Below are positions 3,101 to 61,938 of a DNA stretch of 64,000 nt, one piece after another; the stretch's first letter is position 1, and each line of letters begins with the position of its first letter. The stretch lies in NCBI GenBank assembly GCA_002269645.1, contig NIVC01003576.1, positions 1-64,000 of the forward strand. Direction: 5' to 3'. A program made the position numbers and the translations under genes. The stretch is from Macrostomum lignano (taxonomy: Eukaryota). The notes beneath the pieces were generated by a model that had not been told where the DNA came from, made no database searches, and worked only from the letters and a program-made list of their open reading frames with translations.

Positions 3101-6100
3101 GCCTCTCACCCAACCAATCAGAAACTCAACAGCCGGAGACCAGGTAATCCACAGTGACCGAATCGGCTTAGTGCTTCGCAGCTGTAGACCCGGGATGGTG
3201 CTGATGTCACGGTCTTCGCAGATAGCTAGCAGGTGATGCTCTTAACTTTGATGTTCGCTGCTGATGACCGGGGACTCGTCCTTGATGATGATGGGGGAGG
3301 TCGCAATCCGGGGATCAAGAAACGACGGTCGCGCTCCGGGACGTCTCAATCTAGGCTAAGGTCCCAGGAGGAGTTGGTCCAAGCGGGCCAAAAACACCGG
3401 TTTAAATAGCCGCCAACTGGACCGCAGTTTGTTATAATGGAACACGTCGATTCTGATTGGCTGAGCCGATTTGTTAAAATGCGCGGCGAATTTTCTGATT
3501 GGCTAAGCTTGTTGCTACCCAGAATCACGTGACCGGGAGATCCTATCAGTTCCCACAAGGTTGTAAAAAGATGACAGGTGCGGCCATAAATCAATCAAAA
3601 TCGCAACAAAATGATTTATGACTTTTCGCGTAGGATTGACAGAAGTTAATGAAAAAATATACATTGGAAAGCTCTTATTAAATAGAAAGTGAAGATAATG
3701 AAGAGAAACCGCTAATCGCTAATCCCAAAGTACTTTTAGGGGTAAAACGCTTAGCTGTCAAAGCTGTCACACGCTTGAGTGAACATGAACAATAGGCTCT
3801 CATCTCATAAATCTTGATGGCCTGTCAAAATGATGAGAAAAGAGCTACCGCCCGCGTCCTCTCAGACCATTTGGCGCCCGCCTCAACACTGAGTGAGGCG
3901 CAGGTGGCTGTCAGACCAGCTTCGAAAGCGATGATTTATGACCCAAAAAGCTGCGCCTATGTTATTATGACTACTAGTATGACCAGACATTGTATCTAGT
4001 ATAGATTCTATGACAATTCGCAGAAAAAGGATAAAAATGCCTATTGCCCACTGTTAGTAGGCTAGTAAGTTTAGAGCCCATGTGCTAGCGCGGGATTTGG
4101 AAAAAAGTGCGTCCTCATCATTTAGCTTAACTTAATGATGGCCCTCCTCCAAGCTTTGGGAAAATAGCCCAGAAGAAAGCTATCCTAGCATTGAAGATTC
4201 TTGCTAAAAATTTGATAGAGTCGGGCTGAGCCCGAGCATAATTATAAGCAATGCAATTATCAGGACCAGGGGCCCATCCCGATCTGAGCTTTTTGGTTTC
4301 CATGAGGACATTGATGTTGAGGAGTTCGGATTCTGTGTCTTCCCTGTCTGGGTAGCTTGGATCTGCTCTAGCCCGGTACGAGAGAGCTCTAATATATAAT
4401 GCTGTCGTGGGGGCGGAATGTTTCATTAGACTCAACGTCCTTAATTTATCCTGATAAAAATTCGAGTTCTTATCCAGATGGGGCTGCATTTTATCATTGA
4501 GAAAGTCTTCAAAAAGGTTAGCCGTATCTTCCTCTGTTTCAGCTGTGATTCCCTTGTAACTAAGGTTGGGAAAGATAACCAATTCCCGGGAACAATAATA
4601 CCCTTGACCTCTGGACCACTTACTTGTAGGAACATCCTTGACCTACGAACTACTAGGTGAACTACTAAGAGTAGTCTAAAAGCGTATGTGCTTTTATATA
4701 AAACCTTATTATAATATTCCAGTATGCTGGCGCCGTCAGCATTGTGCTGATCGTGGAAATCGCCGGTGGAATCGCTGCCGGAGTCTTCAGGGCCCAGATT
4801 GGCACAGAGATGCTGCCTACACTCAAGCGGCTGGAAGCCACCCGCTACCTGCCAATTAACCTGGCCGTCAGCAACGACAGCAATCCTAACGCTGTGTTTT
4901 CCTCGCTAGTTAACTACGCTCAGGTGTCGGTAAGTAAAAATACCAACTTAATAAACTTGAAAAAATATAAAATTTTATTGTAATAAAAAGTCAGAATAAT
5001 AAAAATCTAGTATTTTACTATTAGTAAAGTACATAATATTTTAGATCGTTAAGTTTTAAAATTGCGCTAACTATTTTCCCTATATTTCTACTTAAAGTAC
5101 TGTAGTTAGTAAATTCTAATTATTATTAATTTTATACAAGCAACATTCTATAATTATTACTACAAGTAAGGTATAATGAAAATGCTAGATATATATATTA
5201 TGAGTAAATTGTATTTTAACTAATATTACTGTTTTCTCGGCCTATTAGAAAGTAGATGTAAGCATTTGTAATTTGTTGCGGGTAATAAGACTATAAATAG
5301 CTCGTATAAAATTTACACAAGTTTTCTGCACATATTCAACTAAATGTACAAGGCTGAAAAACATGTACTACTCAGAATTTATGCGCATGTCCTACATTCC
5401 AGATGTCTTGCTGCGGTGTCTCCAGCATGTCAGACATAACTGGCGTCAACACGCTGTGGACCAACTCCAGTCGGCAGTACAATGGCAAGACCATCGTTGT
5501 GCCGGTCACGTGCTGCAAGATGAACAAAAAAGACGAGCTGCTGTCCCACCAGAATTGGACTCGGATTGATGACTATCTGATTGATAGGAATTGTCCCTAC
5601 AATGCTAGCAGCTCGCAGATTAATAAGGAGGTAAGTTCACGGGTCGGGTTGCTCGCAGTCCCATAGGGAGGTGGGGCTACGGGGCGGTGAAACTACGGGT
5701 GGTGGGGCTACGGTGGTGGGGCTACGGGGTGGTGGGGCTATGGGGTGTTGGGGCTATGGGGTGTTGGGGCTACGGGGTAGTGGGGCTACGGGGGTGGGGC
5801 TATGGGGTGTTGGGGCTAAGGGTGTTGGGGCTATGGGGTGTTGGGGCTATGGGGTAGTGGGGCTATGGGGTGTTGGGGCTAATGGTGTTGGGGCCATGGG
5901 GTGGTGGGGCTACGGGTGGTGGGGCTACGGGGTGGTGGGGCTACGGGTGTGGGGCTACCTGGGTGGTGGGGCTACGGGGTGGTGGGGCTACGGGATGGTG
6001 GGGCTACCGGGGTGGTGGGGCTACGGGGTGGTGGGGCTACGGGGTGGTGGGGCTACGGGGTGGTGGGCTACGGGTGGTGGGGCTACGGGGTGTGGGGCTA

Positions 6101-9100
6101 ATGGTGTTGGGGCCATGGGGTGTTGGGGCTATGGGTGGTGGGGCTACGGGGTGGTGGGGCTACGGGGTGGTGGGGCTACGGGGTGTGGGGCTACCTGGGT
6201 GGTGGGGCTACGGGCGGTGGGCTACCGGGGTGGTGGGGCTACGGGGTGGTGGGGCTACGGGTGGTGGGCTACGGGGTGTGGGGCTACCTGGGTGGTGGGG
6301 CTACGGGGTGTGGGGCTACCGGGGTGGTGGGGCTACGGGTGGTGGGGCTACCGGGGTGGTGGGGCTACGGGGTGTGGGGCTACCGGGGTGGTGGGCTACC
6401 GGGGTGGTGGGGCTACGGGTGTGGGGCTACCGGGGTGGTGGGGCTACCGGGGTGGTGGGCTACCGGGTGGTGGGGCTACGGGTGTGGGGCTACGGGTGGT
6501 GGGGCTACGGGGTGGTGGGCTACCGGGGTGGTGGGGCTACCGGGGTGGTGGGGCTACGGGGTGTGGGGCTACCTGGGTGGTGGGGCTACGGGGTGTGGGG
6601 CTACCGGGGTGGTGGGGCTACGGGTGGTGGGGCTACCGGGGTGGTGGGGCTACGGGGTGTGGGGCTACCGGGGTGGTGGGGCTACCGGGTGGTGGGGCTA
6701 CGGGGTGTGGGGCTACCGGGGTGGTGGGGCTACGGGGTGGTGGGGCTACGGGGTGGTGGGCTACGGGGTGGTGGGGCTACGGGGTGGTGGGGCTACGGGG
6801 TGTGGGGCTACCGGGTGGTGGGGCTACGGGGTGTGGGCTACCGGGGTGGTGGGGCTACCGGGGTGGTGGGGCTACGGGGTGTGGGGCTACCGGGGTGGTG
6901 GGGCTACCGGGGTGGTGGGGCTACGGGGTGGTGGGGCTACGGGTGGTGGGGCTACGGGTGGTGGGCTACGGGGTGTGGGGCTACCGGAGTGGTGGGGCTA
7001 CGGGGTGTGGGGCTACCGGGGTGGTGGGGCTACCGGGGTGTTGAGGCTACGGGGTGGTGGAGCTGTGATCGGATTTTGGGGTAGTAGGTAGGTTATAAAT
7101 CATTTTTAAATTACGAGAGTAATTCACTAAAAAGTTTTGAGCCTGACACATGATCTGATGGTACATGTACATTGTAAGTGCTGAAAATCAATGCTCTAAA
7201 CACCGTGTGTGCACTGACGAAAGGGTGCCGCATCCTCCCGGCCCCCAATTCACCGGATCTGTCCGAGCGACTTCCACAGCTGTTTCAACACCTGCAGGTT
7301 TGAGGGATGATGAGCGCTGATCAAGGATGTCACAAGTGCAGAAAAAACTAAGCAAGCCTGCCTGATTTGCTCAGAACTTTTTAATCAGTGATACTAGGCC
7401 CAATCAGATTCGAAATTTCTATGCCAACTTTCAGGGCTGCTACGATAAACTGAATTCCTATATCGATCGCTACACCTTAGCCATCATAGTGGTTGGAATT
7501 CTGGTTGGAATGTTTGAGGTAAGCGACATCTATAATAACCATATAGGATGCCAAGTTTGATGCATTCTTGATGCAGCAAAAAACCTGCCACAAGAGTTGA
7601 CAATCAAGTTTTGTGACGGCGTGCAACTCCAAAGATAAAATGGACACATCAATATCCACCCTGGGCATACCCTATCATGAAGTAGACACACTCAGTCATG
7701 AAGTAGACACACTCAGTCATGAAGTAGACACACTCACTCATGAAGTAGACACACTCAGTCATGAAGTAGACACACTCACTCATGAAGTAGACAAACTCAG
7801 TCATGAAGTAGACACACTCACTCATGAAGTAGACACACTCAGTCATGAAGTAGACACACTCACTCATGAAGTAGACACACTCAGACATAAGATATAGACA
7901 CACTCAGACATGAGGTATAGACACACTCAGACATGAGGTATAGACACACTCAGACATGAGGTATAGACACACTCAGACATGAGGTATAGACACACTCAGA
8001 CATGAGGTATAGACACACTCAGTCATGAAGTAGACACACTTAGTCATGAAGTAGACACACTTAGTCATGAAGTAGACACACTTAGTCATGAAGTAGACAC
8101 ACTCAGTCATGAGGTATAGACACACTCAGTCATGAAGTATAGACACACTCACTCATGAAGTATAGACACACTCAGTCATGAAATATAGACACACTCAGTC
8201 ATGAAGTAGACACACTAAGTCATGAAGTAGACACACTCAGTCATGAAGTAGACACACTTAGTCATGAAGTAGACACACTCAGTCATGAAGTAGACACACT
8301 TAGTCATGAAGTAGACACACTTAGTCATGAAGTATAGACACACTCAGTCATGAAGTAGACACACTCAGACATGAGGTATAGACACACTCAGACATAAAGG
8401 TATAGACACACTCAGTCATGAAGTAGACACACTCAGTCATGAGGTATAGACACACTCAGACATGAAGTATAGACACACTCAGACATGAGGTATAGACACA
8501 CTCAGACATGAGGTATAGACACACTCACTCATGAAGTATAGACACACTCAGTCATGAAGTAGACACACTCAGTCATGAGGTATAGACACACTCAGTCATG
8601 AAGTAGACACACTCAGTCATGAGGTATAGACACACTCAGTCATGAAGTAGACACACTCAGACATGAAGTAGACACACTTAGTCATGAAGTAGACACACTT
8701 AGTCATGAAGTAGACACACTTAGTCATGAAGTAGACACACTTAGTCATGAAGTATAGACACACTCAGTCATGAGGTATAGACACACTCAGTCATGAAGTA
8801 TAGACACACTCAGACATGAGGTATAGACACACTCACTCATGAAGTATAGACACACTCAGTCATGAAGTAGACACACTCAGTCATGAGGTATAGACACACT
8901 CAGTCATGAAGTAGACACACTCAGTCATGAGGTATAGACACACTCAGTCATGAAGTAGACACACTCAGACATGAAGTAGACACACTCAGTCATGAGGTAT
9001 AGACACACTCAGTCATGAAGTAGACACACTCAGTCATGAGGTATAGACACACTCACTCATGAAGTATAGACACACTCAGTCATGAAATATAGACACACTC

Positions 9101-12100
9101 AGTCATGAAGTAGACACACTAAGTCATGAAGTAGACACACTCAGTCATGAAGTAGACACACTTAGTCATGAAGTAGACACACTTAGTCATGAAGTATAGA
9201 CACACTCAGTCATGAAGTAGACACACTCAGACATGAGGTATAGACACACTCAGACATAAAGGTATAGACACACTCAGTCATGAAGTAGACACACTCAGTC
9301 ATGAGGTATAGACACACTCAGACATGAAGTATAGACACACTCAGACATGAGGTATAGACACACTCAGACATGAGGTATAGACACACTCAGTCATGAAGTA
9401 TAGACACACTCAGTCATGAGGGATAGACACACTTAGACATGAAGTAGACACATTCAGTCATGAAGTAGACACACTTAGTCATGAAGTAGACACACTCAGT
9501 CATGAAGTAGACACACTTAGTCATGAAGTAGACACACTTAGTCATGAAGTATAGACACACTCAGTCATGAGGTATAGACACACTCAGTCATGAAGTAGAC
9601 ACACTCAGTCATGAGGTATAGACACACTCAGTCATGAAGTAGACACACTCAGTCATGAGGTATAGACACACTCAGTCATGAAGTAGACACACTCAGACAT
9701 GAAGTAGACACACTCAGACATGAGGTATAGACACACTCAGACATGAAGAAGACACACTCAGTCATGAAGTAGACACACTTAGTCATGAAGTAGACACACT
9801 TAGTCATGAAGTATAGACACACTCAGTCATGAAGTAGACACACTCAGTCATGAAGTAGACACACTTAGTCATGAAGTAGACACACTTAGTCATGAAGTAG
9901 ACACACTCAGTCATGAGGTAGACACACTCAGACATAAAGGTATAAACACTCAGTCATGAGGGATAGACACACTTAGACATGAAGTAGACACATTCAGTCA
10001 TGAAGTAGACACACTTAGTCATGAAGTAGACACACTTAGTCATGAAGTAGACACACTCAGTCATGAAGTAGACACACTCAGTCATGAAGTAGACACACTT
10101 AGTCATGAAGTAGACACACTCAGTCATGAAGTAGACACACTCAGTCATGAAGTAGACACACTTAGTCATGAAGTAGACACACTTAGTCATGAAGTAGACA
10201 CACTTAGTCATGAAGTAGACACACTCAGTCATGAGGTATAGACACACTCTGTCATGAAGTAGACACACTCAGACATAAAGGTATAAACACACTCAGACAT
10301 GAAGTATAGACACACTCAGTCATGAAGTAGACACACTCAGACATGAGGTATAGACACACTCAGACATAAAGGTATAAACACACTCAGACATGAGGTATAG
10401 ACACACTCAGACATGAGGTATAGACACACTCAGACATGAGGTATAGACACACTCAGACATAAGATATAGACACACTCAGACATAAGGTATAGACACACTC
10501 AGACATGAGGTATAGACACACTCAGACATAAAGGTATAGACACACTCAGTCATGAAGTAGACACACTTAGTCATGAAGTAGACACACTCAGTCATGAGGT
10601 ATAGACACACTCAGACATAAAGGTATAGACACACTCAGTCATGAAGTAGACACACTCAGTCATGAGGGATAGACACACTTAGACATGAAGTAGACACATT
10701 CAGTCATGAAGTAGACACACTTAGTCATGAAGTAGACACACTTAGTCATGAAGTATAGACACACTCAGTCATGAAGTATAGACACACTCAGTCATGAAGT
10801 AGACACACTCAGTCATGAAGTAGACACACTTAGTCATGAAGTAGACACACTCAGACATGAGGTATAGACACACTCAGACATGAGGTATAGACACACTCAG
10901 ACATAAAGGTATAAACACACTCAGACATGAAGTATAGACACACTCAGTCATGAAGTAGACACACTCAGACATGAGGTATAGACACACTCAGACATAAAGG
11001 TATAGACACACTCAGACATAAAGGTATAGACACACTCAGACATGAGGTATAGACACACTCAGACATGAGGTATAGACACACTCAGACATAAGATATAGAC
11101 ACACTCAGACATAAGGTATAGACACACTCAGACATGAGGTATAGACACACTCAGACATAAAGGTATAGACACACTCAGTCATGAAGTAGACACACTCAGT
11201 CATGAGGGATAGACACACTCAGTCATGAAGTATAGACACACTCAGTCATGAGGGATAGACACACTTAGACATGAAGTAGACACATTCAGTCATGAAGTAG
11301 ACACACTCAGTCATGAGGGATAGACACACTCAGTCATGAAGTATAGACACACTCAGTCATGAGGGATAGACACACTTAGACATGAAGTAGACACATTCAG
11401 TCATGAAGTAGACACACTTAGTCATGAAGTAGACACACTCAGTCATGAAGTAGACACACTTAGTCATGAAGTATAGACACACTCAGTCATGAAGTATAGA
11501 CACACTCAGTCATGAGGTATAGACACACTCAGTCATGAGGTATAGACACACTCAGTCATGAAGTAGACACACTCAGACATGAGGTATAGACACACTCAGA
11601 CATGAAGTAGACACACTCAGACATGAGGTATAGACACACTCAGACATAAAGGTATAAACACACTCAGACATGAGGTATAGACACACTCAGACATGAGGTA
11701 TAGACACACTCAGACATAAAGGTATAGACACACTCAGTCATGAAGTAGGCACACTCAGTCATGAGGGATAGACACACTCAGTCATGAAGTAGACACACTC
11801 AGACATGAGGTATAGACACACTCAGACATGAAGTAGACACATTCGGTCATGAAGTAGACACACTCAGACATGAGGTATAGACACACTCAGACATAAAGGT
11901 ATAAACACACTCAGACATGAGGTATAGACACACTCAGACATGAGGTATAGACACACTCAGACATAAAGGTATAGACACACTCAGTCATGAAGTAGACACA
12001 CTCAGTCATGAGGGATAGACACACTTAGACATGAAGTAGACACATTCAGTCATGAAGTAGACACACTTAGTCATGAAGTAGACACACTTAGTCATGAAGT

Positions 12101-12479
12101 ATAGACACACTCAGTCATGAAGTATAGACACACTCAGTCATGAAGTAGACACACTCAGTCATGAAGTAGACACACTTAGTCATGAAGTAGACACACTCAG
12201 ACATGAGGTATAGACACACTCAGACATGAGGTATAGACACACTCAGACATGAGGTATAGACACACTCAGACATGAGGTATAGACACACTCAGTCATGAGG
12301 TATAGACACACTCAGTCATGAGGTATAGACACACTCAGTCATGAGGTATAGACACACTCAGTCATGAGGTATAGACACACCACTGATCAATCATACAATA
12401 AAACCGATTGCAGATCATTTGCGTAGTCATGGCTTGCAGCATGGTTCAGAAGATTCGCAGCGAAAGGCAGAATGTGTAA
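155..12479 (+). CDS. Tetraspanin, 5 exons (155-461, 4723-4929, 5403-5630, 7435-7518, 12414-12479); exon 1 has frame disruptions as given
   Basis: TM1 NKLVLVIVNIVFLLAGAAIVGVSIW and TM2 LIGFCGCCGAI are in exon 1. Exon 2 has TM3 YAGAVSIVLIVEIAGGIAAGVF. The large loop carries CCG (MSCCG), PVTCC and the distal GC (GCYDKL). TM4 is AIIVVGILVGMFE|IICVVMAC, with TAA at 12477-12479. All four introns are GT-AG. Confidence 0.9.
540..1225 (+). repeat. ~31-33 bp minisatellite (GGAAAATATCCTTGACCTTTAACYAATTCCCT) in tetraspanin intron 1
   Basis: About 20 degenerate tandem copies are visible directly, with irregular 1-nt indels. Confidence 0.9.
1560..2635 (-). mobile_element. Degenerate non-LTR retrotransposon, 3' part of reverse transcriptase ORF (Jockey/I-group-like)
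   Basis: Minus-strand motifs include YRPTSLTSCLGKL, LGVFFDVNGAFDGV, AGVPHGGVLSPLL, ISEFADD and FLGITLD, with frameshifts. Confidence 0.85.
2636..4130. mobile_element. ~1.5 kb unclassified insertion interrupting the LINE RT
   Basis: The LINE reads GYFPKAWRRAIIK up to 4131 and resumes PIIK...YRPTSL at ~2635. The intervening DNA has no RT motifs. Confidence 0.55.
4131..4660 (-). mobile_element. Upstream part of the same LINE (linker before RT: APGPD ... GYFPKAWRRAIIK)
   Basis: ORF 4127-4582 contains KKLRSGWAPGPD and FLARIFNA, the usual pre-RT region of APE-type LINEs. Confidence 0.75.
5668..7065 (+). repeat. G-rich ~15-17 bp minisatellite (GGGGTGGTGGGGCTAC) in tetraspanin intron 3
   Basis: Direct tandem copies start ~37 nt after the donor at 5631. 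Confidence 0.95.
7675..12380 (+). repeat. 21/23 bp minisatellite (TCATGAAGTAGACACACTCAG / CATGAGGTATAGACACACTCAGA), 4.7 kb, in tetraspanin intron 4
   Basis: Direct tandem copies end ~33 nt before the acceptor at 12412-12413. Confidence 0.95.
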
Positions 12480-13309
12480 CTAATTCGGCAGAATGTGTAC
12501 AAAAAGGGAGAAATAAACAAAATGTTACAGTGTTTGAGTTTTTTAAAGCCTGTTTACATAAACCATTTGGCTATTTAAAAGCTGACGGAATCCTTTCCTT
12601 TTATTGAAGAATAATAAATTTAAATCGCGGGTAATGTTTTGTTTTAACTCAACGCAATTAATTAATAAAATCATTTATATAGCTACTAGCCATTTAAAAC
12701 ATAATTTCGTTATTGTTATTGATTATACCTGAACATGGTTATTCTGTAGAACTCAAACATTTTTTAATTAAAAAAACTGATGAATATTTGCGACCGTTTC
12801 GTGACGCTTTAACTTTAATTTGTTTTTTTCTCAACTTTTAACTCTTTAATTTGTTACTAGCTGATCTGTATAATCAATTAATATTATTGACTGCATAATT
12901 AAAACAAGTAGTTATTGATATTAAGCCAAAATATATTTTGCTTTGTACTTTGACATGACTGGTACATATTAAATATGAACGTATTGCTAATTAATCTCAT
13001 TTTTATCAGCTTCGCAATGAAAAATGTCAAAACCATTTTGCTTTGCTAAAGTTTGCTTGTATAACAATAATTGAACTATTTTTTATCAAGCGTATAAAAA
13101 TAAAACAAAAAAGCTACTTGTAATATTTCAAAGTTAATAATATGGCTGACGTCTAATTTGCTTTTAGTCCACGATGATAAATATATTAAAACTATAGCTA
13201 ATGATACTTTAATTTGCTATAGCCAGAAAAACTGCATCTGATCACACTCATTTTATATGAAGGCATTAGATGATTAGAGCGATAGAAAATCTACTTTAGG
13301 CTATTAAAA

Positions 13310-14560
13310 ACAACAACAGTGACCGGGGCGCCGGCATCAGCCAGCAGGCAGTCAACGAAACGCCGAGTACGCGCCTGCTCCGGCCGGTAGGGTGCTGCAA
13401 GGTCAGCAGCAGCACCTCCTGCACCGGCTCTGGGCAGTACGACTCGGTGCGGATGATGTGGCCTGCCAGCTGGAGTCGCCGACGGCCCAACAGTTCGCTG
13501 GGACGGGACAGGCCGGTGCCGCATTGGTGACTCGCTCGTAGCCGATCTTGAAGGCGGCGCGCAGCAGGCCAGCGTGCGCCGCATCGACCAGCTGTTCGAG
13601 CATCCGTCAGCGTCCAGGTCTCGGCGTTGTACAACAGGACGGTCTCGATCACCGCCTGGAACAACGTCGCCCTCTGGCGGCAGGCAGGGCATCGGACTTC
13701 AGGAGAGCCCTCTCGGAACGAAAGGCAGCCCAGGCAAGCCCGCGGCGACGCCGCAAATCCTCGCGGACGTCGGGAACCAGACCGCGGAGGTAGACGAACT
13801 GCTGACAACGCGGAAGCTCTTTCATCTGTCCACCAGGGCCTCGGCACAAAATCGCAGCCTCGATATCGTCCGGCACGCAGAGCACGACGTTCTTCTGCGT
13901 GTTGACCACCAGGCCGACACTTGCCGACACTTGACACGAGCATCGCTCGTGCCATGATACAGCGCCATGACGGCGGAACTCAGCTGCTCTGGCACGTTGG
14001 TACGCACGAAGCACCATTGGGAGCACGGCCCTCATGACCGAGTCGAAAGCCTTCCTGAATTCAACAAAGAGAGCAACAAAGAGATCTACTGGCGTGTCCG
14101 CGCTTCCTCGATGACTCGGCGAAGAGCCAGGATCTGCGCCACTGTGCCGCGCAAATAGGGATCCAGCACGGGCTGCACCCGCGATAGCAGCATCGCAGCG
14201 CAGGACTGCAGGCAGATACCTCGGTGCTCCTCAAGCCGTGTGGTGCCCGGCTTCTTAGGAACTGCGACGATGTGCGCTGTGGTCCATTCGTTAGGTGCCT
14301 CCTCACCGAAGAGCACGCGGTTCATCACACTGACGACCTCGCTGGCCACACAGTGAAGTCGCAGCGCCTCGATGGGCAACTCGTTTGGACCCAGCGCTTT
14401 GCCGCCCGGAGTCCTCAGGGCGAGCCTCACAACGTCGGCTGCGCTGACTGGAGCTACATTGAGACTCTCCTCTGCCGACAACGTCGTCCGCGACGGCGGC
14501 CTCAGATCGTTTGGCAGCGGGGGGGGGGCGGCGCGTTGACGATGGCGGCAAAACTCACGC
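13310..14560 (-). mobile_element. RTE-like non-LTR retrotransposon fragment with degenerate RT
   Basis: Motifs include KALGPNELPIE, EWTTAHIVAVPKKPG, HRGICL, LFVEFRKAFDSV, LLYNAETWTLT and RRLQLAGHIIR. There are frameshifts and internal deletions. Confidence 0.85.
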
Positions 14561-15802
14561 AGCTCATTTCATAAAATATTCATAAATGATTTATTAAATG
14601 ATTCATATTTCCTAAAAGCCCATACATGTATGAGTCTATGTCTTAGGTTTTCTGTAGCTTTGGGACCAATGCAACAAGTGCGAATATAACTATGGTATCA
14701 CGTGCAAGCACGAGGAATTCAAGCATAAACTACTAAACAACATGTACTTTAATAAATTGGCGCTATAAAAAAGCCTAGCTAACTTAATTGAGCGGTGTGT
14801 CGTCGCTGCGTAAACTGTGTGCCATCGATAAAACCATTACAGTGCTTAAATTAGACACAGTTTAACAACCGGCCCAATGGCTGCTAGGATTTGATAAATA
14901 AAATTACTTGTATATTCAAAAATCACGTGACTTCAATCGATAGCTATATAAACGACAGCTGTCTTGTCGTCACATGGCTATAAAATCACGTGATGGTTTT
15001 AAAAAAATAAAAATAAAAAAAGCCAAAATTACAATTTACCGAAATAAGTTTTTTTCTTCAAAAAATCGTTTAAATAAAATTACTTAGAAATCTGTTTTCG
15101 AAAAGTAATAACGTTTTTATTATAATTTCCAAATTCAAAGCAGAAAAAAATCTGTAAACGAATACACATGCATAAAAATTAATTTTCATTCCAAATCTGA
15201 ACACAAAAGTATGTTTGATCACGGGCATAAGTTATAATTTATGAATCCGGAAAAATGCGAAAAAAAAGTGTGAACCACATCGCACACGTGGGAAGCAAAA
15301 ACCGCTGTCTTATGGAATTCTCAGCTGATGAAAATTGTTTTAAATTGTTCAAGTAGTGAAACAAACAATTTTCAAAAAGGTTAGACTAACATGCAGCACT
15401 TGTCTCTCAGATTACTAAAATTTTTGTTGCATATCACTAAAATTCATAATTAAAAAATAAACAATATAAAAAAATGACAAAAAACGGTATCTCATTAGCA
15501 ACCTGAAATTTAATGATCATCTATCGGCAAGTTATAACAAAAAAGTAAAAATTAGTGCGTTAGAGTACACGCTACTGTAAAATGGGCGATGAAATTGTTA
15601 TAAAAACCGGATGCATCGAAACAGTTGTAGATAAGATCTCGAATAAATTTACAAACAAACAAGTTTTGATTGAATAAATGAACATTTTAAGTAAGAAGAT
15701 AGGATAACTTTAACGGGTAGTTTCTATGAATTTCAAGAATCAAGCATCGTTTTCAGGAAAAAAAACTTCGCAAAAATTGTCACTCTTTTACCTCAAGTAA
15801 TC

Positions 15803-16038
15803 TTAGAGGCTAGTGTATAGGTCGACCGTATACCCTCTAACTCTTCCCTTTAGTCTTTCTATCCAAGTTCCAAAATTGTCTATGGCTAATCCTTTGAGAC
15901 AATTATAAGCGGTACGCAATGATCGCGGGACTCGTTTAGGCCATAGAATAATGAGCGTGTGTAGTATGTATTAGCCTTGAATAATGATGGCTCCACTCGT
16001 GACAGCGATCACTATTCAAGGCTAATACATACTACACA
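15803..16038. other. Two adjacent hairpins (15803-15840; 26-bp perfect stem 15958-15983/16013-16038), probably a small non-autonomous element
   Basis: TGTGTAGTATGTATTAGCCTTGAATA is the exact reverse complement of TATTCAAGGCTAATACATACTACACA. TTAGAGG...CCTCTAA encloses GTATAGGTCGACCGTATAC. Confidence 0.6.
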
Positions 16039-16237
16039 ATCTACCATTGTGCTGACGTCTATTGCTTGCCTTTTCCGTTAATGTCTATGGGCAAGACCGA
16101 ATCGACTGCCAAGGAATTCTAAATCTAGCTTTAGAATTCCCTGCTACTGCTGTTAAAAATGGGAACTTTCAACTTGGCTGGGAAAAGCAATGCAGTTATC
16201 TATGAAGAAATAAGTCCGTCAGATCATTACACCGCAT

Positions 16238-19200
16238 TCACATCGAGTGCCGCAGGGCCGTGAGTAGCCATCGAAAGGCAACCCATTCTTTCGGCTCAAC
16301 AAACGGTATTAAGCTCAGGCTGCTGGAGGCAAGATCTGGCAGATCGAGTTTCTGAATCCAGGACAGCAACTGGCCTCTGGCAATACCCTGGGTGACGATC
16401 AGCAGGATTAAATCGCTGCTGGACTGCTGATGCACCATCCGCCACACGTGGCACAATAAATTGGCTTCTGCGGTCAGCGGCGCCGAGGCGTCGAAAATGT
16501 TGGTGACAATGTCCGCGCTCAGGAACAGCAGGACGGCTTGGATTGGCTGGCGGTGGCAGCGGCTGACAGGGAAATCCGGCTGCAGTTCGGGTTGGACCGC
16601 GAGATTGTAGAAAGTACATGTAAGTAATTTCACGTATCGCGTTTTATCTTGAACACTGTCTGGCCTTAAATCCCTTCAGGTCACCCCCACTAAATACTGA
16701 AGCATCTTCCCCTTCTATTCTCCCATCAGTCTCTTGTATTCACTAGCTGCTTCACTCTCCCCTTCACTTTCTCCCTTTCACTCTCCCCTTCAATCGCCAC
16801 TTCATTCTCCACTTCATTCTCCCCTTCACTCTCAACTTCACTCTCCATTTCACTCTCTCCCCTCCACTCTCCCCTTCACTTTCTCCCCTTCACTCTCCCT
16901 TTCACTCTCCCCTTCAATCGCCATTTCATTTTCCACTTCATTCTCCCCATCAATCTCCCCTTCACTCTCCCCTTCACTCTCCCCGTCACTCCCCTTCACT
17001 CTCCCCTTTTCCCTCTCCTTCACTCTCCACTTCACTCTTCCCCCTCCACTCTCTCCCCTTCACTCTCCCCGTCACTCCCCTTCACTCTCCCCGTCACTCC
17101 CCTTCACTCTCCCTTTTCCCTCCCCTTCACTCTCCCCTTCACTTTCCTTCATTCCCCCCTTCACTCTCCCCTTCACTTTCCCTTCACTCTCCCCTTCACT
17201 CTCCCCTTCACTTTCCCTTCATTCCCCCCTTCACTCTCCCTTCATTCCCCCCTTCACTCTCCCCTTCACTTTCCCTTCATTCCCCCCTTCACTCTCCCCT
17301 TCACTTTCCCTTCATTCCCCCCTTCACTCTCCCCTTCACTTTCCCTTCATTCCCCCCTTCACTCTCTCCTTCACTTTCCCTTCACTCTCCCCTTCACTCT
17401 CCCTTCACTCCCCCCGCTTTATTTTTCCCTCACCCTCTCTCCTTCACTCTCCCCTTCACTCTCTCAAGTAAAGCAGTGGTCACCAAGCCGCCAGCTCTCA
17501 CCAGCTCAATGCGATCAGCCGCAATGCTTTCAAGTTGAATCTCGCAGAAATCAAACTTGGCCATCCAGTTGCCCTCTTGAGCTTGGAGCAGGCGGAGCAG
17601 CTCAGCCCGGGACTCGTTCCTGCCCGCCAGGCTGATGCACAGAGTCTGCCTGACTGTCGCCAGAAATCGTTGATGACGCTTCAGCGTTCTCCGTCCCTGT
17701 AAACAGTTAATGAGCAGCAGATCGCGAAGCAGCTCGTTCTTGGGTGGGTTTAAAGAAAGAAGTGGTCGATGACGCGTCAGTTGCGGCTGAGCCAGCGCCA
17801 GCAGCACCAGACGGCCGCACATTCGAAACGGGCCTTTGAATAAGGCGCGAAGTAGATCCACTACGGTGTTGCTGGCGGAGACGGCCGCGTGGAAAGCCTC
17901 CCTGAGAGTGACCTTTTGTCCGTTCTGCGGGAGCGTGTGACCGGCGTGATTATCTAATCTGCGACCGAAATACCTTCGCAACGTAAAGAGAAATGAGCAA
18001 GAAAGGAGAGAGGAGTAGGAGAGAGGTAGAGAAGAAAGATTGAACAGGAGAGTGAAGGGGGAAAGTAAAATGATGAGTGAATGGAAGAGCATAAAAAGGA
18101 GAGAGTTAAGGGGAGAGCGAAGGGGAGAGTGAATGGTAAAAAGTGAAGGGGAGATTGAAGGAGAGAGTGAGGGGGGACGAATGAAGGGGAGAGAGTGAAG
18201 GGGAGAGTGAAGGGGAGAGACAGCAGGGTAGAGTGTAGGAGAAAGTGAAGGGGAGAGTGAAGGGAGACAGTGAAGGTGAGAGAGTGAAGGGCAGAAACAG
18301 TAGGGTAGAGTGTAGGGGAGAAAGGGAAGGTGAGAGAGTGAAGGGGAGAGTGAGGGGAGAGAATGAAGGGGAGAGCGAAGGGGAGAGAGTGAAGGGGAGA
18401 GTGAGGGGAGAGAGTGAAGGGGAGAGTTAAGGGGAGAGAGTGAAGGGGGAGAGTAAAGGGGAGAGAGTGAAGGGGAGAGAGTGAAGGGGAGAGGGGGAAG
18501 GGGAGAGAGTGTAGGGGAGAGTGAAGGGGGAGAGTAAAGGGGAGAGAGTGTAGGCGAGAGTGAAGGGGAGAGTGAAGGGGAGAGTGTGTAGGCGAGAGTG
18601 AAGGGGAGAGTGAAGAGGAGAGAGTGAAGGGGAGAGAGTGAAGGGGAGAGAGTGAAGGGGAGAGAGTGAAGGGGAGAGAGTGAAGGGGAGAGTGAAGAGG
18701 AAGAGTGAAGAAAGGAATTCCACCAGCTCTTACCCGTTCACTAGCAGGTAGGAAGCTAAAAACTTCCGAATAGCCAAGTCGGTAGACTTCAGCAGCAATA
18801 TTCCAGTGCTCGGCTCCGCTCAGGTACCTGTCCAGGTAGCTCCACAGTCCCGTGTAGTCATTGTTTCTAGGAAAAATTCGGCTAGGCCTTGCTTTGCGGA
18901 GCCCGCTAGGCAGGCAGGCTGCAGCCTCATCACTGTTATCCACGCGAAGAGCGATGTGCTTTAGAGGACTAAAGCAATGAGACTGCGAGAGTTCCTCAAG
19001 CAACACTGATATTCTCTTGAGGCAATCAATGCCTTGGACATTTGGGCATTGTTCCACAGCCAATTCTAAAGCTTCATCAACGGCTGTCTTTATCTGTCCA
19101 ACGGTAAAGTCGGATTCGACTAGCAGCACCAGCCTGGGCTCCGAGTGACTGTTGTCTAATCTAGCAGGCAGCTCGCCATACTGCTTTGCATTCAGCGCCT

Positions 19201-19369
19201 CGATTGGGCAGTCAAGACCATGCTTGGTTGTTGTATTGCTGCACAGGCACTGCAAGAAACCTTGGTTCCAGTACGAATTTATCTCTGCATGGAATTTATA
19301 TAAAATTTCCTGCAGTTTAGGGTTGCTATCTATCAGATAGTGCAACCCAATGGTTAAATTGCTTGACAT
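16238..19369 (-). CDS. ~465 aa protein, putative death domain plus C-terminal SEFIR/TIR-like domain (Act1/CIKS- or MyD88-like adaptor); exons 19369-18734, ~17924-17502, 16579-16238
   Basis: Three non-repetitive open segments are joined by phase-0 GT-AG junctions; the exon 2 acceptor is uncertain (17924 vs ~17958). The gene itself is well supported. Domain calls rest on motif resemblance only: LDRYL..EHWNIAAEVYRLGYSEV...TVVDLLRAL and LCISL...KFDFCEIQLESIA...QAVLLFLS. Confidence 0.7.
16720..17465. repeat. Pyrimidine-rich (CACTCTCCCCTT)n repeat in intron 2 of the minus-strand gene
   Basis: Direct degenerate ~12-14 bp tandem copies. Confidence 0.9.
18000..18712. repeat. Purine-rich (GAGAGTGAAGGG)n repeat in intron 1 of the same gene; reverse complement of the intron 2 repeat
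   Basis: Direct degenerate tandem copies. Confidence 0.9.
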
Positions 19370-20847
19370 TATTCATAAATAGTGTTTAATAGTGTTCTGA
19401 ATTAGAGAACAAACAAATTAAACAATGATAGAGTAAATAGCATTATTTAAAAAGTTCAAGTTAAATATTGTTAAGAGCCATTATTTTTATTTAAGCTTCG
19501 AATTTGCCATATTTAAAGTCAGAATATTATTTAGATTAGAATTATAACAAACATAAGAATAAATACTCTTTTTTCAATCTAATCAACTGCTAAAAGTATT
19601 TCCTGTATTAACATAAGAATATCAATAGCTGATTGAATCCTATATACTATAAGCTTCTGAGCCCTAAATGAGTTGCAATATATACCATGTATAGTTTAAT
19701 ACTTAGATTGTAATTATATAAACAAGGCATAGATTTCAATTTTACGATTTGCGATGCGATCAAAAATGACCAAAAAAAGGAATAGTCGAGATATTTTAAA
19801 TTAAAAATGTAAACTTAAAAAGCATACAGAAGCAACATGGAACTAAAATAGTATTATTACAACAGTACCTTGTTGGGACGGAAAGCAAATTAATCAGGTT
19901 TGTTACGAAAGTTAAATCTGTGGTTGTTATTGCTAGAGAAAGTTTAAACAATTTTTTGCTTTAAAAAACTGTATTAAATTTTATTTATAACATTGTTGGT
20001 AAAAACAAATAAGTTGTACAATTTTTTAAGATTTGCTTATTCTCGTAGAGAAAATAACTCAAGATTTTTTGCGCCTAGATGGGATTTATCCGTTTAACAT
20101 CACAAAAAATTCTACATTGAGCTTCCATTTCCATAAGTTCGTCGTTAGGTATAACTTACACTGGAGAATAAAACTGTCGCAGAAAGCGTTCCTTATTTTA
20201 GTACGTTTGACTAAAATTGCAGATTTTAAGGTCAAGTTTTTACATCTACATGATGATGATATTTAGTTTGTTTGAATAATAAGAAAGTCTAATGAATTTA
20301 AAAACTCAATTATCTAACGGTACATCATTCACCTTAAGTGCGTATTCGTCAGCCGGCTTGAGCGTGGTTGGTTGAAGCTGCAACCCTTGTTAATTGGCGG
20401 CAAGATTGATGAGAAGGGCGGCCGTGCTATGAAGTTTTTTAGAGTGCTAGTTCGAGAGGCCGCAGATTACATGTGAATATACATGGTGTTGCGTATAGGG
20501 GATTGCGTTAACAATTACAAACTTTTGTCAGATACATATATGTGGTTATTTCATTTTGGTGTACTCGTACATGTTTTTGAAAAATCACGCGTATGCCATT
20601 AGGTACGTGTACGATCGTAAATTCAAATCAATGCTATCAAATAATCAAATTAGCGATCAAGTTGAATGTGGGAGTTTCATGAATAGATTATTTGCGGATG
20701 TGACTCCAAATCTACCTGGATAGATTTTTATATATAAAGCTTCAATTTACATTCTGAATTCCTGTACAATTGATTGTTACTGCAGTTATTAGTACTTTAA
20801 TCCATAAATGCTTAAGTGCGTATGTCTTGAAAAATTGTTACAGCATC

Positions 20848-22126
20848 AGGGGCTTTAGCACCATTGGCCTTTGGCACCAGGGGCTTTAGCACCAGCAGGC
20901 TTTAGCACCAGCAGGCTTTAGCACCAGGGGGCTTTAGTACCAAGGACGCCTGCACCAGGGACTTTAGCACCAGGGGCTTTAGCACCTGCAGGCTTTAGCA
21001 CCAGGGGCTTTAGCACCAGGGGCTTTAGCACCAGGGGCTTTAGCACCAGGGGCTTTAGCACCAGGGGCTTTAGCACCAGGGGCTTTAGCACCAGGGGCTT
21101 TAGCACCAGGGGCTTTAGCACCAGGGGCTTTAGCATCAAGGACGCCTGCACCAGGGACTTTAGCACCAGGGGCTTTAGCACCTGCAGGCTTTAGCACCAG
21201 GGGCTTTAGCACCAGGGGCTTTAGCACCAGGGGCTTTAGCACCAGGGGCTTTAGCACCAGGGGCTTTAGCACCAGGGGCTTTAGCACCAGGGGCTTTAGC
21301 ACCAGGGGCTTTAGCACCAGGGGCTTTAGCACCAGGGGCTTTAGCACCAGGGGCTTTAGCACCAGGGGCTTTAGCACCAGGGGCGCCAGCACCAGGGGCT
21401 TTAGCACCAGGGGCGCCAGCACCAGGGGCGCCAGCACCAGGGGCGCCAGCACCAGGGGCGCCAGCACCAGGGGCGCCAGCACCAGGGGCGCCAGCACCAG
21501 GGGCGCCAGCACCAGGGGCGCCAGCACCAGGGGCGCCAGCACCAGGGGCGCCAGCACCAGGGGCGCCAGCACCAGGGGCTTTAGCACCAGGGGCTTTAGC
21601 ACCAGGGGCGCCAGCACCAGGGGCGCCAGCACCAGGGGCGCCAGCACCAGGGGCGCCAGCACCAGGAGCGCCAGCACCAGGGGCTTTAGCACCAGGGGCT
21701 TTAGCACCAGGGGCGCCAGCACCAGGGGCGCCAGCACCAGGGGCGCCAGCACCAGGGGCGCCAGCACCAGGGGCGCCAGCACCAGGGGCGCCAGCACCAG
21801 GGGCGCCAGCACCAGGGGCGCCAGCACCAGGGGCGCCAGCACCAGGGGCGCCAGCACCAGGGGCGCCAGCACCAGGGGCGCCAGCACCAGGGGCTTTAGC
21901 ACCAGGGGCTTTAGCACCAGGGGCGCCAGCACCAGGGGCTTTAGCACCAGGGGCTTTAGCACCAGGGGCGCCAGCACCAGGGGCGCCAGCACCAGGGGCG
22001 CCAGCACCAGGGGCGCCAGCACCAGGGGCGCCAGCACCAGGGGCGCCAGCACCAGGGGCGCCAGCACCAGGGGCGCCAGCACCAGGGGCGCCAGCACCAG
22101 GGGCGCCAGCACCAGGGGCGCCAGCA
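20848..22126. repeat. 15-bp minisatellite with two variants (AGCACCAGGGGCTTT / AGCACCAGGGGCGCC)
   Basis: About 85 tandem copies arranged in variant blocks, lying between two divergently oriented genes. Confidence 0.95.
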
Positions 22127-22422
22127 CGTTTAGACGCGCGTAAAGTTCCGACATGAGAGGCACAATTGCAGATTATAGATTTCCATAACTTTGCTATTTT
22201 TATTTTTTATTCCACCGTAAAATAATCACTCGCTTCTGTTTTATTACGCAGGGAATTTAGGGCTACATACAATGCAGATCTCAACCCAGCCAATCACAGC
22301 TCATTGGTTGGTTTCTACATTCGCTCTATATATACACAGCAGTTCAACTGCACTCCGGACTGAATTAGCTGCCTGCGATACTGCAGATTTAATTTACCTT
22401 TCCGTCTATCAGTGCCTCCGAG

Positions 22423-32942
<10,520 letters not shown>

Positions 32943-34554: not shown

Positions 34555-37314
<2,760 letters not shown>

Positions 37315-43507: not shown

Positions 43508-45529
43508 ATGGTAGTAATCCACATTAAGAAAGGCGATCAGAGCCAGTTCCTATTTGAAACCACAGTGGCCCAGCCTGTGGACGATTTCATTGCTCAAGCT
43601 GTCCAGGTGTACAATGGTCGACTAAAAATTGGTCGAATTTGCGACGAAATTAGCGAGTTGGAGAAGCACGGCTTGACTTTGCCGCCGAACATGCAGGGCC
43701 TCACAGATGAGCAGGTGACCGAATTGAAACTGCGCGACGAATGGGGCGAAAAGTGCACACCCAGCGGGGGGTTCGTTGAGAGCCGCGATCCCATTGGGCG
43801 ACGGAACGGCCGGGCTCCAACTGAGAATATTGTTCAGGTGAGAATCTGGGGTGGAGCTGCTTGCTCAGGCTACAGGCCGCAAATCTTATATTCAATTGTA
43901 AAGTTTCCAGAGCTTGTGAACCTTCTGGGGACATTGTTAATTGACTGTCAGTGACATTTGACTGTCAGTGACATTTGACTGCCAGTGACATTTTACTGTC
44001 AGTGACATTTGACAGTCAGTGACATTTTGACTGTCAGTGACATTTGACTGCCAGTGACATTTTGACTGCCTGTGACATTTGACTTTCAGTAACATTTGAC
44101 TGTCAGTGACATTTTGACTGCCTGTGACATTTGACTGTCAGTGACATTTGACTGCCAGTGACATTTGACTGCCAGTGACATTTGACTGCCAGTGACATTT
44201 TGACTGTCAGTGACATTTGACTGCCAGTGACATTTTGACTGCCTGTGACATTTGACTGCCAGTGACATTTGACTGTCAGTGACATTTTACTGTCAGTGAC
44301 ATTTGACTGTCAGTGACATTTTACTGTCAGTGACAGTTAAAAAAACACAGAAACCGTAAAAGTTTTCAATTTTTATGTTTGAAAAGGGATCAACTTGATT
44401 GTAAAACCATTACGAAAACAAACCCGCAGGTGCTGTCCAAGACTCGCAAAGAGGCGCGGCAGATGATCAGCAAAGATCTGGTTGCTGCTGGCCAGGCTGT
44501 CAACATGGCCCGCATCCAGGAGGCCTTGCAAATCCTCAGCGGCGCCATGACCATCGCCTACCCAATGGGACTGCCGCCGCACGAGCCAATCAGAATGGAG
44601 CTGCAGAACGAGGAGGATCTCTCTGGGACGCAGGTATGTACTCGTAGCTGCGTTTTGGAGAGACAGGGCAAGTCTCATTGAGATATGGATTAGTCTCATT
44701 GAGATATGGACTAGTCTCATTGAGATATGGACAAGTGTCATTGAGATATGGGCAAGTCTCATTGAGACATGGACTAGTCTCATTGAGATATGAACTAGTC
44801 TTATTGAGATATGGACTAGTCTAATTGAGATATGGACTAGTCTCATTGAGATATGGATTAGTCTCATTGAGATATGGACTAGTCTCATTAAGATATGAAC
44901 TAGTCTCATTGAGATATGGATTAGTCTCATTGAGATATGGACTAGTCTCATTGAGATATGGGTAAATCTCATAGAGATTGGTTTAATGGGGCTCGTATCT
45001 CAAAGAGAAATAGCGCAAGTCTCATAGAGAGACTAAATCTCATAGAGATTTATGTATTACACCTCATATCAGTTGAGGCAAGTCTCATAGAAATTTGGGA
45101 AAAGTTTCAAGCATCAAAAATATTTTATCAAATCTCATAGAATACAGGACATGTTTTTACCCGTCATTCCATCATGCCGCGCCATCGCAGGCGAGTCTGG
45201 GGGTGATCCCACCCGGCGACGCCTCCGCGTGGTTCTCCGGCAAGGAGATGCAGGCTGGCAAACTGCTTAGCGACTATCTTGGCCGCAACGAGAAGTGCAA
45301 AGCCATCGTCAAGTTGGCTAAGCGTGGCCAGGGTCCGCCGGCCCGCGAGCCGGTCGTCTCCGAGCAGGAGCAGAAAGAGATGATGGCATTCTATTATCGC
45401 AAACAGCAGGAAGCTAAAAAGCTGGAGGAGAGTCGAGACGATTCCTACATGGACAGCGAGTGGGCGGACAGCCAGCAGCTTAGGCGGGCTTTTCACGGGC
45501 TGTCCGACATCAAATGGGGACCAAAGTGA
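43508..45529 (+). CDS. CFAP298: Cilia- and flagella-associated protein 298 (C21orf59/kurly); exons 43508-43837, 44430-44633, 45191-45529; 290 aa
   Basis: Recognisable sequence includes MVVIHIKKGDQSQFLFETT, YNGRLKI, HGLTLPPNMQGLTDEQV, DPIGRRNGRAP, AYPMGLPPHEPIR, LSDYLGRNEKCK and YYRKQQE...SEWAD...FHGLSDIKWGP. Both introns are phase-0 GT-AG. Confidence 0.95.
43950..44335 (+). repeat. 17-18 bp minisatellite (TGACTGTCAGTGACATT) in CFAP298 intron 1
   Basis: Direct tandem copies. Confidence 0.93.
44670..44960 (+). repeat. 21-bp minisatellite (TAGTCTCATTGAGATATGGAC) in CFAP298 intron 2
   Basis: Direct tandem copies. Confidence 0.93.
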
Positions 45530-61916: not shown

Positions 61917-61938
61917 CTAGCACACCAATGGGCACAGC

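Follow-up and report, generated by a model that had tools for sequence, protein, structure and literature searches.

A lineage-restricted orphan gene of Macrostomum lignano with a marginal death-domain resemblance and no demonstrable SEFIR or TIR domain

The minus strand of the window (by which we mean the whole 64-kb stretch of DNA analysed) carries a three-exon gene, the features of which are collected in Table 1. Its reading frame opens with an ATG at 19369 (codon 19369-19367), with an in-frame stop two codons upstream, and closes on a TGA stop at 16238-16240. The three exons are joined in phase 0 and encode a 466-aa product that includes LWSYLDRYLSGAEHWNIAAEVYRLGYSEVFSF, LREAFHAAVSASNTVVDLLRAL, TLCISLAGRNESRAELLRLL, KFDFCEIQLESIAADRIE and QAVLLFLS; the spliced gene proposed in the initial annotation was exact in its coordinates, and the peptides quoted there all lie within the product. 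Exon 1 carries the start codon and encodes an N-terminal module predicted to be alpha/beta (aa 1-172) together with death-domain-like helices 1-3; exon 2 supplies death-domain-like helices 4-6 and the beginning of the C-terminal alpha/beta module, a stretch that had been read as betaA/alphaA/betaB. Two other exon 2 acceptors, AAG/GTATTTC and CGCAG/ATTAG, were discarded because they break the reading frame, and CCCGCAG/AAC is preferred since it keeps the phase and yields the protein deposited in GenBank, described below. The GT..AG boundaries of intron 1 are conserved in both of the other genomic copies of the gene (L001 and L002), and the satellite array that fills most of this intron is reverse-complementary to the array of intron 2, the two forming an inverted repeat pair.

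Table 1. Coordinates of the gene, its exons and introns, and the death-domain-like segment (slash, splice junction; residues numbered on the 466-aa product)
Feature	Position	Strand	Residues	Details	Basis
Three-exon gene	16238-19369	-			ORF, splice sites
Exon 1	18734-19369	-	1-212	donor CGG/GTAAGAG	ORF, splice donor, PAA50723.1 identity
Intron 1	17925-18733	-		809 nt	GT..AG boundaries, TRF
Intron 1 satellite array	18096-18710			+ strand unit GGAGAGAGTGAAGG; most of intron 1	TRF
Exon 2	17502-17924	-	213-353	423 nt; phase 0/0; acceptor CCCGCAG/AAC, donor CTG/GTGAGAG	
Intron 2	16580-17501	-		922 nt	TRF; conserved in homeolog
Intron 2 satellite array	16750-17463			+ strand unit CTTCACTCTCCC; most of intron 2	TRF
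Exon 3	16238-16579	-	354-466 + TGA	acceptor CTGCAG/CCG; remainder of predicted alpha/beta C-terminal module	
Death-domain-like part 1	18734-18853	-	173-212	predicted helices 173-184, 189-206, 209-212; W189, L198-G199	AF2 DSSP, hhalign
Death-domain-like part 2	17790-17924	-	213-257	predicted helices 219-229, 233-241, 243-257; SNTVVDLLRAL motif	AF2 DSSP, hhalign

The first Met aside, the product matches GenBank PAA50723.1 (hypothetical protein BOX15_Mlig018140g1, Macrostomum lignano) at every residue, and it shares 96% identity with UniRef A0A1I8H839, so that the earlier guess of a flatworm origin was right. Because the GenBank annotation of the assembly behind PAA50723.1 was derived from RNA-seq transcripts (PMC5730564), a spliced transcript exists, and the identity with PAA50723.1 also settles the exon 2 acceptor. 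The locus is Mlig018140.g1, a genuine protein-coding gene of three exons, its annotation built on transcripts from RNA-seq. A search of a small set of M. lignano papers returned no expression data for Mlig018140 or Mlig030177. Judged from its sequence, the product is a soluble 466-aa protein without signal peptide or membrane span, there being no membrane span or hydrophobic stretch in it (the maximum Kyte-Doolittle 19-residue mean is 1.52). Smith-Waterman scores did not exceed those of shuffles significantly, whether for a duplication linking the N- and C-terminal modules or for a second death-domain-like copy.

Three genomic copies of the gene were found, namely the locus itself, its homeolog L001 and L002, as fits the known redundancy of the DV1 assembly (PMC5730564). 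All three have a 466-codon ORF and canonical splice sites, the ORFs of L001 and L002 being intact and their splice sites identical to those of the gene described here. Compared with L001, exon 1 is 95.3% identical (dN/dS 0.33), exon 2 99.5% (and 100% identical to L002) and exon 3 98.2%. Over the whole gene dN/dS against L001, the more distant copy, is 0.40, with 13.5 synonymous and 16.5 nonsynonymous changes where ~22% synonymous would be expected under neutrality, and the gene is evidently under purifying selection. A transposable-element origin was considered and dismissed, since the flanks are syntenic at L001 and L002 and a tetraspanin gene lies downstream at both.

No homolog outside M. 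lignano was found in large protein databases. The M. lignano paralog cluster alone was returned by a protein search at E<=0.01, by phmmer at E<=1e-3 against 1.84e9 representatives, and by a two-sequence profile at E<=10 against 5.8e9 proteins. In Pfam at E<=10, Death, TIR, TIR_2 and SEFIR were all absent whether the whole protein, three segments of it or a chimeric UniProt model was used as query, and NCBIfam and PADLOC returned no matches, TIR-type PADLOC matches included. A sequence search of the PDB with the whole protein and with the death-domain-like segment gave chance matches only (caspase-3 small subunit at E 0.15, canavalin and beta-lactamase). Within the 64-kb window Rfam and tRNA scans gave no matches, and the window holds no immune-related content; no IL-17-pathway context was found there. 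A lineage-restricted orphan, with a possible diverged death-fold module and without demonstrated Act1- or MyD88-like architecture, is the description that suits the gene best. It shares with the taxonomically restricted (orphan) genes of M. lignano the lack of a homolog beyond the species in very large databases, expression, repeat-rich surroundings and duplicated copies as expected of the redundant DV1 assembly (PMC5730564), and we found nothing that speaks against placing it among them.

The death domain proposed by the initial annotation for the middle of the protein has evidence both for and against it. When aligned in domain-global mode with hhalign, two death-domain profiles settle on aa 150-269 and aa 173-272, respectively, with their helices in the expected register: W189 is matched to the Trp of helix 2, LGYSEV to helix 3 and NTVVDLLRAL to the ATVxxLxxAL motif of helix 5. 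Sequence shuffles equalled these scores in 0/100 and 2/100 trials, and permuting the template in blocks did so in 4/100 and 2/100 (p ~0.01-0.04 overall). On the other hand, Pfam Death gave no match at E<=10 to the whole protein or to the isolated segment, a profile built from 120 real death domains gave -1 bit with HMMER --max, and that at aa 312-333 rather than at aa 173-257, and local hhalign remained at noise level, its scores being reached by 16/200 and 22/150 shuffles (p ~0.08 and ~0.15). In global mode a column-reversed real death-domain profile scored 9.8 versus 10.5 for the native order, and six held-out genuine death domains scored 18-71 globally and 30-82 locally, as against 10-12 and 15-16 for the segment here. 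Of the core positions, W189 and T232-V233..L236..A239-L240 are retained. The helix-4 Trp, also conserved in death domains, is replaced here (F223/H224), and the paralog has Cys where the 'LG' motif of this protein has G199. UniProt automatically names A0A1I8I8J1, a chimeric model that contains this sequence, 'Death domain-containing protein', and no better death-domain resemblance occurs elsewhere in that model.

We consider the death-domain resemblance at aa 173-257 to be marginal. With the Death domain (Pfam PF00531, PROSITE PS50017; death-fold superfamily: FADD, MyD88, IRAK/Pelle, TNFR1, CRADD) the segment has in common a length of ~85 residues, six predicted helices, the helix-2 Trp, an LG turn, the helix-5 motif T-V-x-x-L-L-x-A-L and the in-register global profile alignment. 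It differs in falling below all standard thresholds and far under the held-out members, in its want of the helix-4 Trp, and in having an unassigned alpha/beta module on either side of it, not DED, CARD, TIR, kinase or receptor parts.

Structure prediction gave models of low confidence. The full-length AF2 model has a pLDDT of 35.6 (~30 over aa 173-257) and a model of aa 165-265 alone reaches 52.6; in these two independent runs six helices of death-domain-like lengths were predicted at aa 173-257. The death fold itself is a Greek-key antiparallel bundle of six helices and ~80-90 residues. At these confidence levels Foldseek against the PDB returned no match at E<=1e-3 for either model and recovered none of the death, TIR and SEFIR folds, death-fold chains being absent even at E<=10 for the aa 165-265 model. 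The top weak matches of the full-length model were RecA/KaiC-type cores (E 0.2-1), and we rejected a relationship to these as generic alpha/beta matching by a poor model. Strand and helix alternate over aa 306-464 of the full-length model, where pLDDT is 30-54; the STIR fold for comparison is flavodoxin-like, with a parallel sheet of five strands.

The C-terminal SEFIR or TIR domain that had been proposed received no support. In addition to the absence of any Pfam match, hhalign scores did not rise above the shuffle background, either against SEFIR (PF08357; local 13.5, reached by 22/60 shuffles; global 3.6, reached by 25/80; from a test alignment of two sequences only) or against TIR (PF01582/PF13676; local 14.9, 18/60; global 5.3, 15/80). 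The SEFIR alignment fell outside the proposed betaA-betaC region, and TIR never aligned to it. The positive controls were strong, with a score of 155 for the held-out TLR4 TIR, and 33 local and 19 global for Act1 versus IL-17RA SEFIR. By reading, TIR box 1 (F/Y-D-x-F-I-S-Y), a SEFIR box 1-like k-V-F-I-x-Y-S and TIR box 2 (RDxxPG) are absent from the protein. Near the C-terminus AFRWLLTAL bears a loose resemblance, by reading only, to TIR box 3 (FW).

There is thus no support for a demonstrable SEFIR or TIR domain in the C-terminal module (~aa 262-466), and the protein should therefore not be filed as Act1/CIKS- or MyD88-like. The general statement on architecture was correct, in that non-amniote ACT1 is built as DD-SEFIR, which parallels the DD-TIR of MyD88 (PMC7190641). 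With non-amniote ACT1/CIKS (C. elegans ACTL-1; death domain plus SEFIR) the sole likeness is the proposed order of a helical and then an alpha/beta module of ~160-200 residues, whereas here there is no SEFIR signal of any kind and an extra 170-residue N-terminal module is present. The likeness to MyD88 (death domain plus TIR) is again one of loose order, a helical module followed by an alpha/beta module; the protein differs in having no TIR signal and no boxes 1 and 2, and its death-domain-like module is not N-terminal. The assignment of the quoted motifs to Death and SEFIR appears to be not more than chance.

The predicted layout of the protein, then, is an alpha/beta N-terminal module, an all-helical central module of six helices and an alpha/beta C-terminal module. 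We give not quite an even chance to the reading in which the six-helix module is a death-fold domain that has diverged very far and the protein serves in the cytosol as a scaffold or adaptor. It would assemble with other death-fold proteins by homotypic helix-bundle contacts, and the two flanking modules may supply partner binding or some activity. A substantial possibility, though one that we would stop short of calling probable, is that WxxxA..LG and TVxxLLxAL are a chance resemblance within an ordinary helical linker or bundle, and that this taxon-restricted protein has a different fold and role, e.g. as an enzyme or binding protein of alpha/beta type that carries a helical insert. The failure of every standard significance test (Pfam, HMMER profile, local hhalign and Foldseek), the distance to every held-out true death domain and the near-equality of the reversed profile all argue for chance, and since shuffling a sequence abolishes its helical periodicity, any helical segment may look better than it should by the global-mode p-values. 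Yet two profiles pick out the same 85-100 of 466 residues in the correct register, only 2-4% of block permutations, in which the helical character is kept, score as high, the predicted helices are six in number and of the right lengths, and an independent automatic annotation names a model with this sequence death-domain-containing.

Very unlikely, in our judgement, is a death domain joined to a SEFIR/TIR (STIR) domain, which would make the protein an adaptor resembling Act1/CIKS or MyD88 in an IL-17- or Toll-type pathway. The documented DD-SEFIR of non-amniote ACT1 and its parallel in MyD88 (PMC7190641) provide a precedent, the strand/helix alternation at aa 306-464 is of a size compatible with a flavodoxin-like fold (in a low-confidence AF2 model), and AFRWLLTAL is loosely like box 3, by reading only. 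These points are outweighed by the lack of TIR, TIR_2 and SEFIR in Pfam at E<=10 and of TIR-type PADLOC matches, by background-level hhalign scores where controls reach 155 and 33, by the absence of boxes 1 and 2, by weak top Foldseek matches that are RecA/KaiC-type and not TIR or SEFIR, and by the position of the death-domain-like segment in mid-protein after a 170-residue module, unlike that in MyD88 or ACT1. It is likewise improbable that the gene is a transcribed ORF without function, whether a duplicate in decay or an artefact of annotating repeat-rich DNA. Homologs are wanting everywhere, the surroundings are satellite-rich with satellite filling both introns, and the nucleotide conservation of exon 1 (95.3%) is no higher than that of its 5' flank (95.0%); however, the 466-codon ORF and canonical splice sites are kept in 3/3 copies, synonymous changes are in excess over nonsynonymous ones (dN/dS 0.33-0.40), and the gene model comes from RNA-seq transcripts. 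Although a long shot, one might also imagine a flatworm-specific death-fold adaptor too diverged for sequence methods. The alpha/beta module at its C-terminus would then be either a STIR-like (TIR/SEFIR) domain in cryptic form or a new effector domain, and the protein might be a lineage-specific stand-in for death-fold adaptors, FADD and CRADD being reported as lost from the phylum (PMC11463336).

In its present state the finding gives no means of testing for an IL-17 or Toll-type pathway in flatworms. Should the central module not be a death fold, Mlig018140.g1 would be one more expressed orphan gene, and a caution that short helix and beta-alpha-beta patterns matched by eye are insufficient for calling a Death plus SEFIR architecture. 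If the death fold is genuine, a taxon-restricted three-module death-domain protein would be added to the flatworms, a phylum reported to be without FADD and CRADD, and it would offer a handle on the assembly of death-fold signalling complexes in Macrostomum.

The minus-strand gene at 16238-19369 of the window is as the initial annotation described it. It opens with an ATG at 19369, two codons downstream of an in-frame stop, and the same ORF left unspliced runs into satellite sequence. All three exons connect in phase 0 with no frame break, and the resulting 466-aa product contains every peptide quoted in that annotation. Two other exon 2 acceptors lying closer to the satellite (AAG/GT and GCAG/AT) were rejected because they lose the reading frame. 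Minus its initial Met, the product is identical to GenBank PAA50723.1 ('hypothetical protein BOX15_Mlig018140g1'), which bears out both the splice model and the guess of a flatworm origin. Moreover, a spliced transcript exists, since genome-guided RNA-seq transcripts underlie the annotation of assembly Mlig_3_7 (PMC5730564). The protein has neither a membrane span nor a signal-like N-terminus, and no immune or signalling gene cluster lies near the gene within the 64-kb window.

Exons of the gene and other coding features of the window
Feature	Window position	Strand	Splice sites and remarks
Exon 1	19369-18734	minus	donor CGG/GTAAGAG
Exon 2	17924-17502	minus	acceptor CCCGCAG/AAC, donor CTG/GTGAGAG; 423 nt, phase 0/0
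Exon 3	16579-16238	minus	acceptor CTGCAG/CCG, stop TGA
MFS transporter exon/fragment	23640-24014	plus	
CFAP298	45095-45529	plus	
Brix-domain protein	55171-55758	plus	
Retroelement with RNase H and reverse transcriptase	62400-63832	minus	

The protein's sole match among 5.8 billion clustered proteins is one Macrostomum lignano cluster, to which PAA50723.1, PAA76258.1 (g2) and PAA60454.1 (Mlig030177g1) belong, as does a 96% identical paralog (UniRef A0A1I8H839) whose odd name, 'Protein SSH4', has no basis visible in the sequence. A further member, A0A1I8I8J1, is a 1078-aa model that is chimeric: upstream of the gene it carries a translated period-15 satellite (PLVLKPLVLK...), and downstream of it LINE reverse-transcriptase fragments (window 20920-22127, 13291-14481). 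A phmmer search of 1.84 billion representatives (E<=1e-3) returned the paralog alone, a two-sequence profile search (E<=10) found no further relatives, and neither Pfam (run on the whole protein and on three segments, E<=10) nor NCBIfam, PADLOC and PDB sequence searches gave a meaningful match.

Two other genomic copies, L001 (on NIVC01002151) and L002 (on NIVC01000834), retain an ORF of 466 codons and share the gene's splice sites exactly. As the flanks are collinear at 88-95% identity and a tetraspanin gene lies downstream in both, the three loci are homeologous or allelic copies in a redundant assembly, and a mobile element is ruled out as their source. Relative to L001, 16.5 of the gene's differences are synonymous and 21.5 nonsynonymous (dN/dS 0.40); for exon 1 alone, where about 22% of changes are expected to be synonymous under neutrality, the figures are 13.5 and 16.5 (dN/dS 0.33). 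That the gene is a functionless ORF we regard as improbable. Across window 15638-19969 the gene and L001 have not diverged evenly. Identity is 95% over the 5' flank and exon 1, rises to 96.5-99.5% from exon 2 through intron 2 to exon 3, and drops to 88% in the 3' flank; synonymous divergence is 0.10 in exon 1 but 0.009 in exon 2. The pattern points to a tract of gene conversion or to constraint on the nucleotide sequence of the 3' half.

With a G+C content of about 40-45%, the window is eukaryotic; satellites are extremely abundant (47 TRF rows), with exceptional loads at 5666-7064, 7675-12380, 28873-32612, 34556-36980 and 57737-61919, among others. Examples are a 21-23-nt unit in 213 copies (4.7 kb), a 23-nt unit in 160 (3.7 kb), a 31-nt unit in 134 (4.2 kb) and (TATC)n in 600 (2.4 kb), and many such arrays give long spurious ORFs. 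Introns 2 and 1 (16750-17463 and 18096-18710) are filled by a single 12-14-nt satellite (CTTCACTCTCCC), found nowhere else in the 64 kb, in opposite orientations on either side of exon 2; the arrays form 216 inverted pairs, whose arms reach 95 nt in length and are 81% complementary, and the opposed arrays are conserved in L001 (10709-11177 and 11839-12448). Their predicted duplex (200 x 200 nt) reaches -302 kcal/mol versus -219 +/- 7 for shuffles, so that the arrays could pair very stably in the pre-mRNA. Such pairing would loop out exon 2, and we infer a geometry favouring in-frame exon skipping or back-splicing. In layout it recalls the kind of inverted repeat that promotes skipping of an exon or formation of circular RNA; the arms of foldback elements, which consist of tandem repeats, are another parallel.

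The initial annotation had read the protein as a death domain joined to a SEFIR or TIR domain. Its premise was correct, in that ACT1 of non-amniotes is DD-SEFIR, parallel to the DD-TIR of MyD88 (PMC7190641). The death-domain half, at aa 173-257, was compared with a profile of eleven aligned death domains, and with a profile of 120 real death-domain proteins retrieved with that alignment, each either carrying PF00531 or named FADD, CRADD, MyD88, Fas, Pelle or IRAK4. Standard tests did not support it. HMMER (maximum sensitivity, single target) gave -1 bit at aa 312-333 (AGRNESRAELLRLLQ), outside the segment; this second 'ATVxxLxxAL'-like string (NESRAELLRLLQ, window ~17563-17628, minus), the preferred site in local mode, shows how readily the motif arises in Leu-rich helices. 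Local hhalign scores were 16.5 with the eleven-domain profile (reached by 16/200 shuffles) and 15.4 with the real one (22/150), the latter's aligned stretch being down to SNTVVDLLRALF. Marginal support came from domain-global alignment, which scored 12.0 on aa 150-269 (0/100 shuffles) and 9.8 on aa 173-272 (2/100), respectively, and for both profiles fell in the expected register, with W189 as the helix-2 Trp, LGYSEV as helix 3 and NTVVDLLRAL as helix 5. Permuting six template column blocks is a stricter control than sequence shuffling, because helical character is kept while domain order is lost; native order scored 10.9 (reached by 4/100 permutations) with the eleven-domain profile and 10.5 (2/100) with the real one, whose column-reversed version scored 9.8. 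Six held-out death domains in shuffled context (TNFR1, TRADD, RIPK1, p75, PIDD and IRAK1) scored 18-71 globally and 30-82 locally. The segment lacks the conserved helix-4 Trp and the glycine of LG is Cys in the paralog; should it be a death domain, its divergence exceeds that of each of those six.

The full-length AF2 model, from the only alignment obtainable (two sequences), had a pLDDT of 35.6, and the model of isolated aa 165-265 one of 52.6. Both predicted six helices at 173-257, whose lengths resemble those of death-domain helices 1-6, and neither gave a Foldseek match in the PDB at E<=1e-3 or any death-fold chain; the structural comparison is therefore uninformative and does not count as a negative. 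That UniProt names A0A1I8I8J1 'Death domain-containing protein' hints independently that a curated death-domain signature fires, and no part of that model outside the shared region is more death-domain-like.

The SEFIR/TIR half found no support. Pfam TIR, TIR_2 and SEFIR gave no match at E<=10, and hhalign profiles scored at shuffle level: 14.9 locally (18/60) and 5.3 globally (15/80) for TIR (5 sequences), and 13.5 (22/60) and 3.6 (25/80) for SEFIR (2 sequences), on short stretches outside the proposed betaA-betaC region. These tests have power, since a held-out TLR4 TIR scored 155 and Act1 against IL-17RA SEFIR alone scored 33. Reading the sequence shows neither TIR box 1 nor box 2; AFRWLLTAL (aa 455-462, window ~16253-16276, minus), at the last-helix position, loosely resembles box 3 (FWxxLxxAI) with one residue out of place and is picked up by no profile test. 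The beta/alpha alternation that AF2 predicts over aa 306-464 fits many alpha/beta folds, and the best Foldseek matches, which were weak, were to RecA/KaiC-type cores.

The full DD plus SEFIR/TIR reading is thus very improbable, and the protein should not be filed under ACT1 or MyD88, from which it also differs by an extra 170-residue N-terminal module. That the death-domain resemblance is due to chance, leaving an unclassifiable orphan, is a serious possibility somewhat below an even chance; the standard searches speak for it and the in-register global alignment against it. FADD and CRADD are reported missing from flatworms (PMC11463336). The reading that we tentatively favour, at just under an even chance, is that the central module of this M. 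lignano protein is a diverged death fold, which would serve as a homotypic interaction scaffold.
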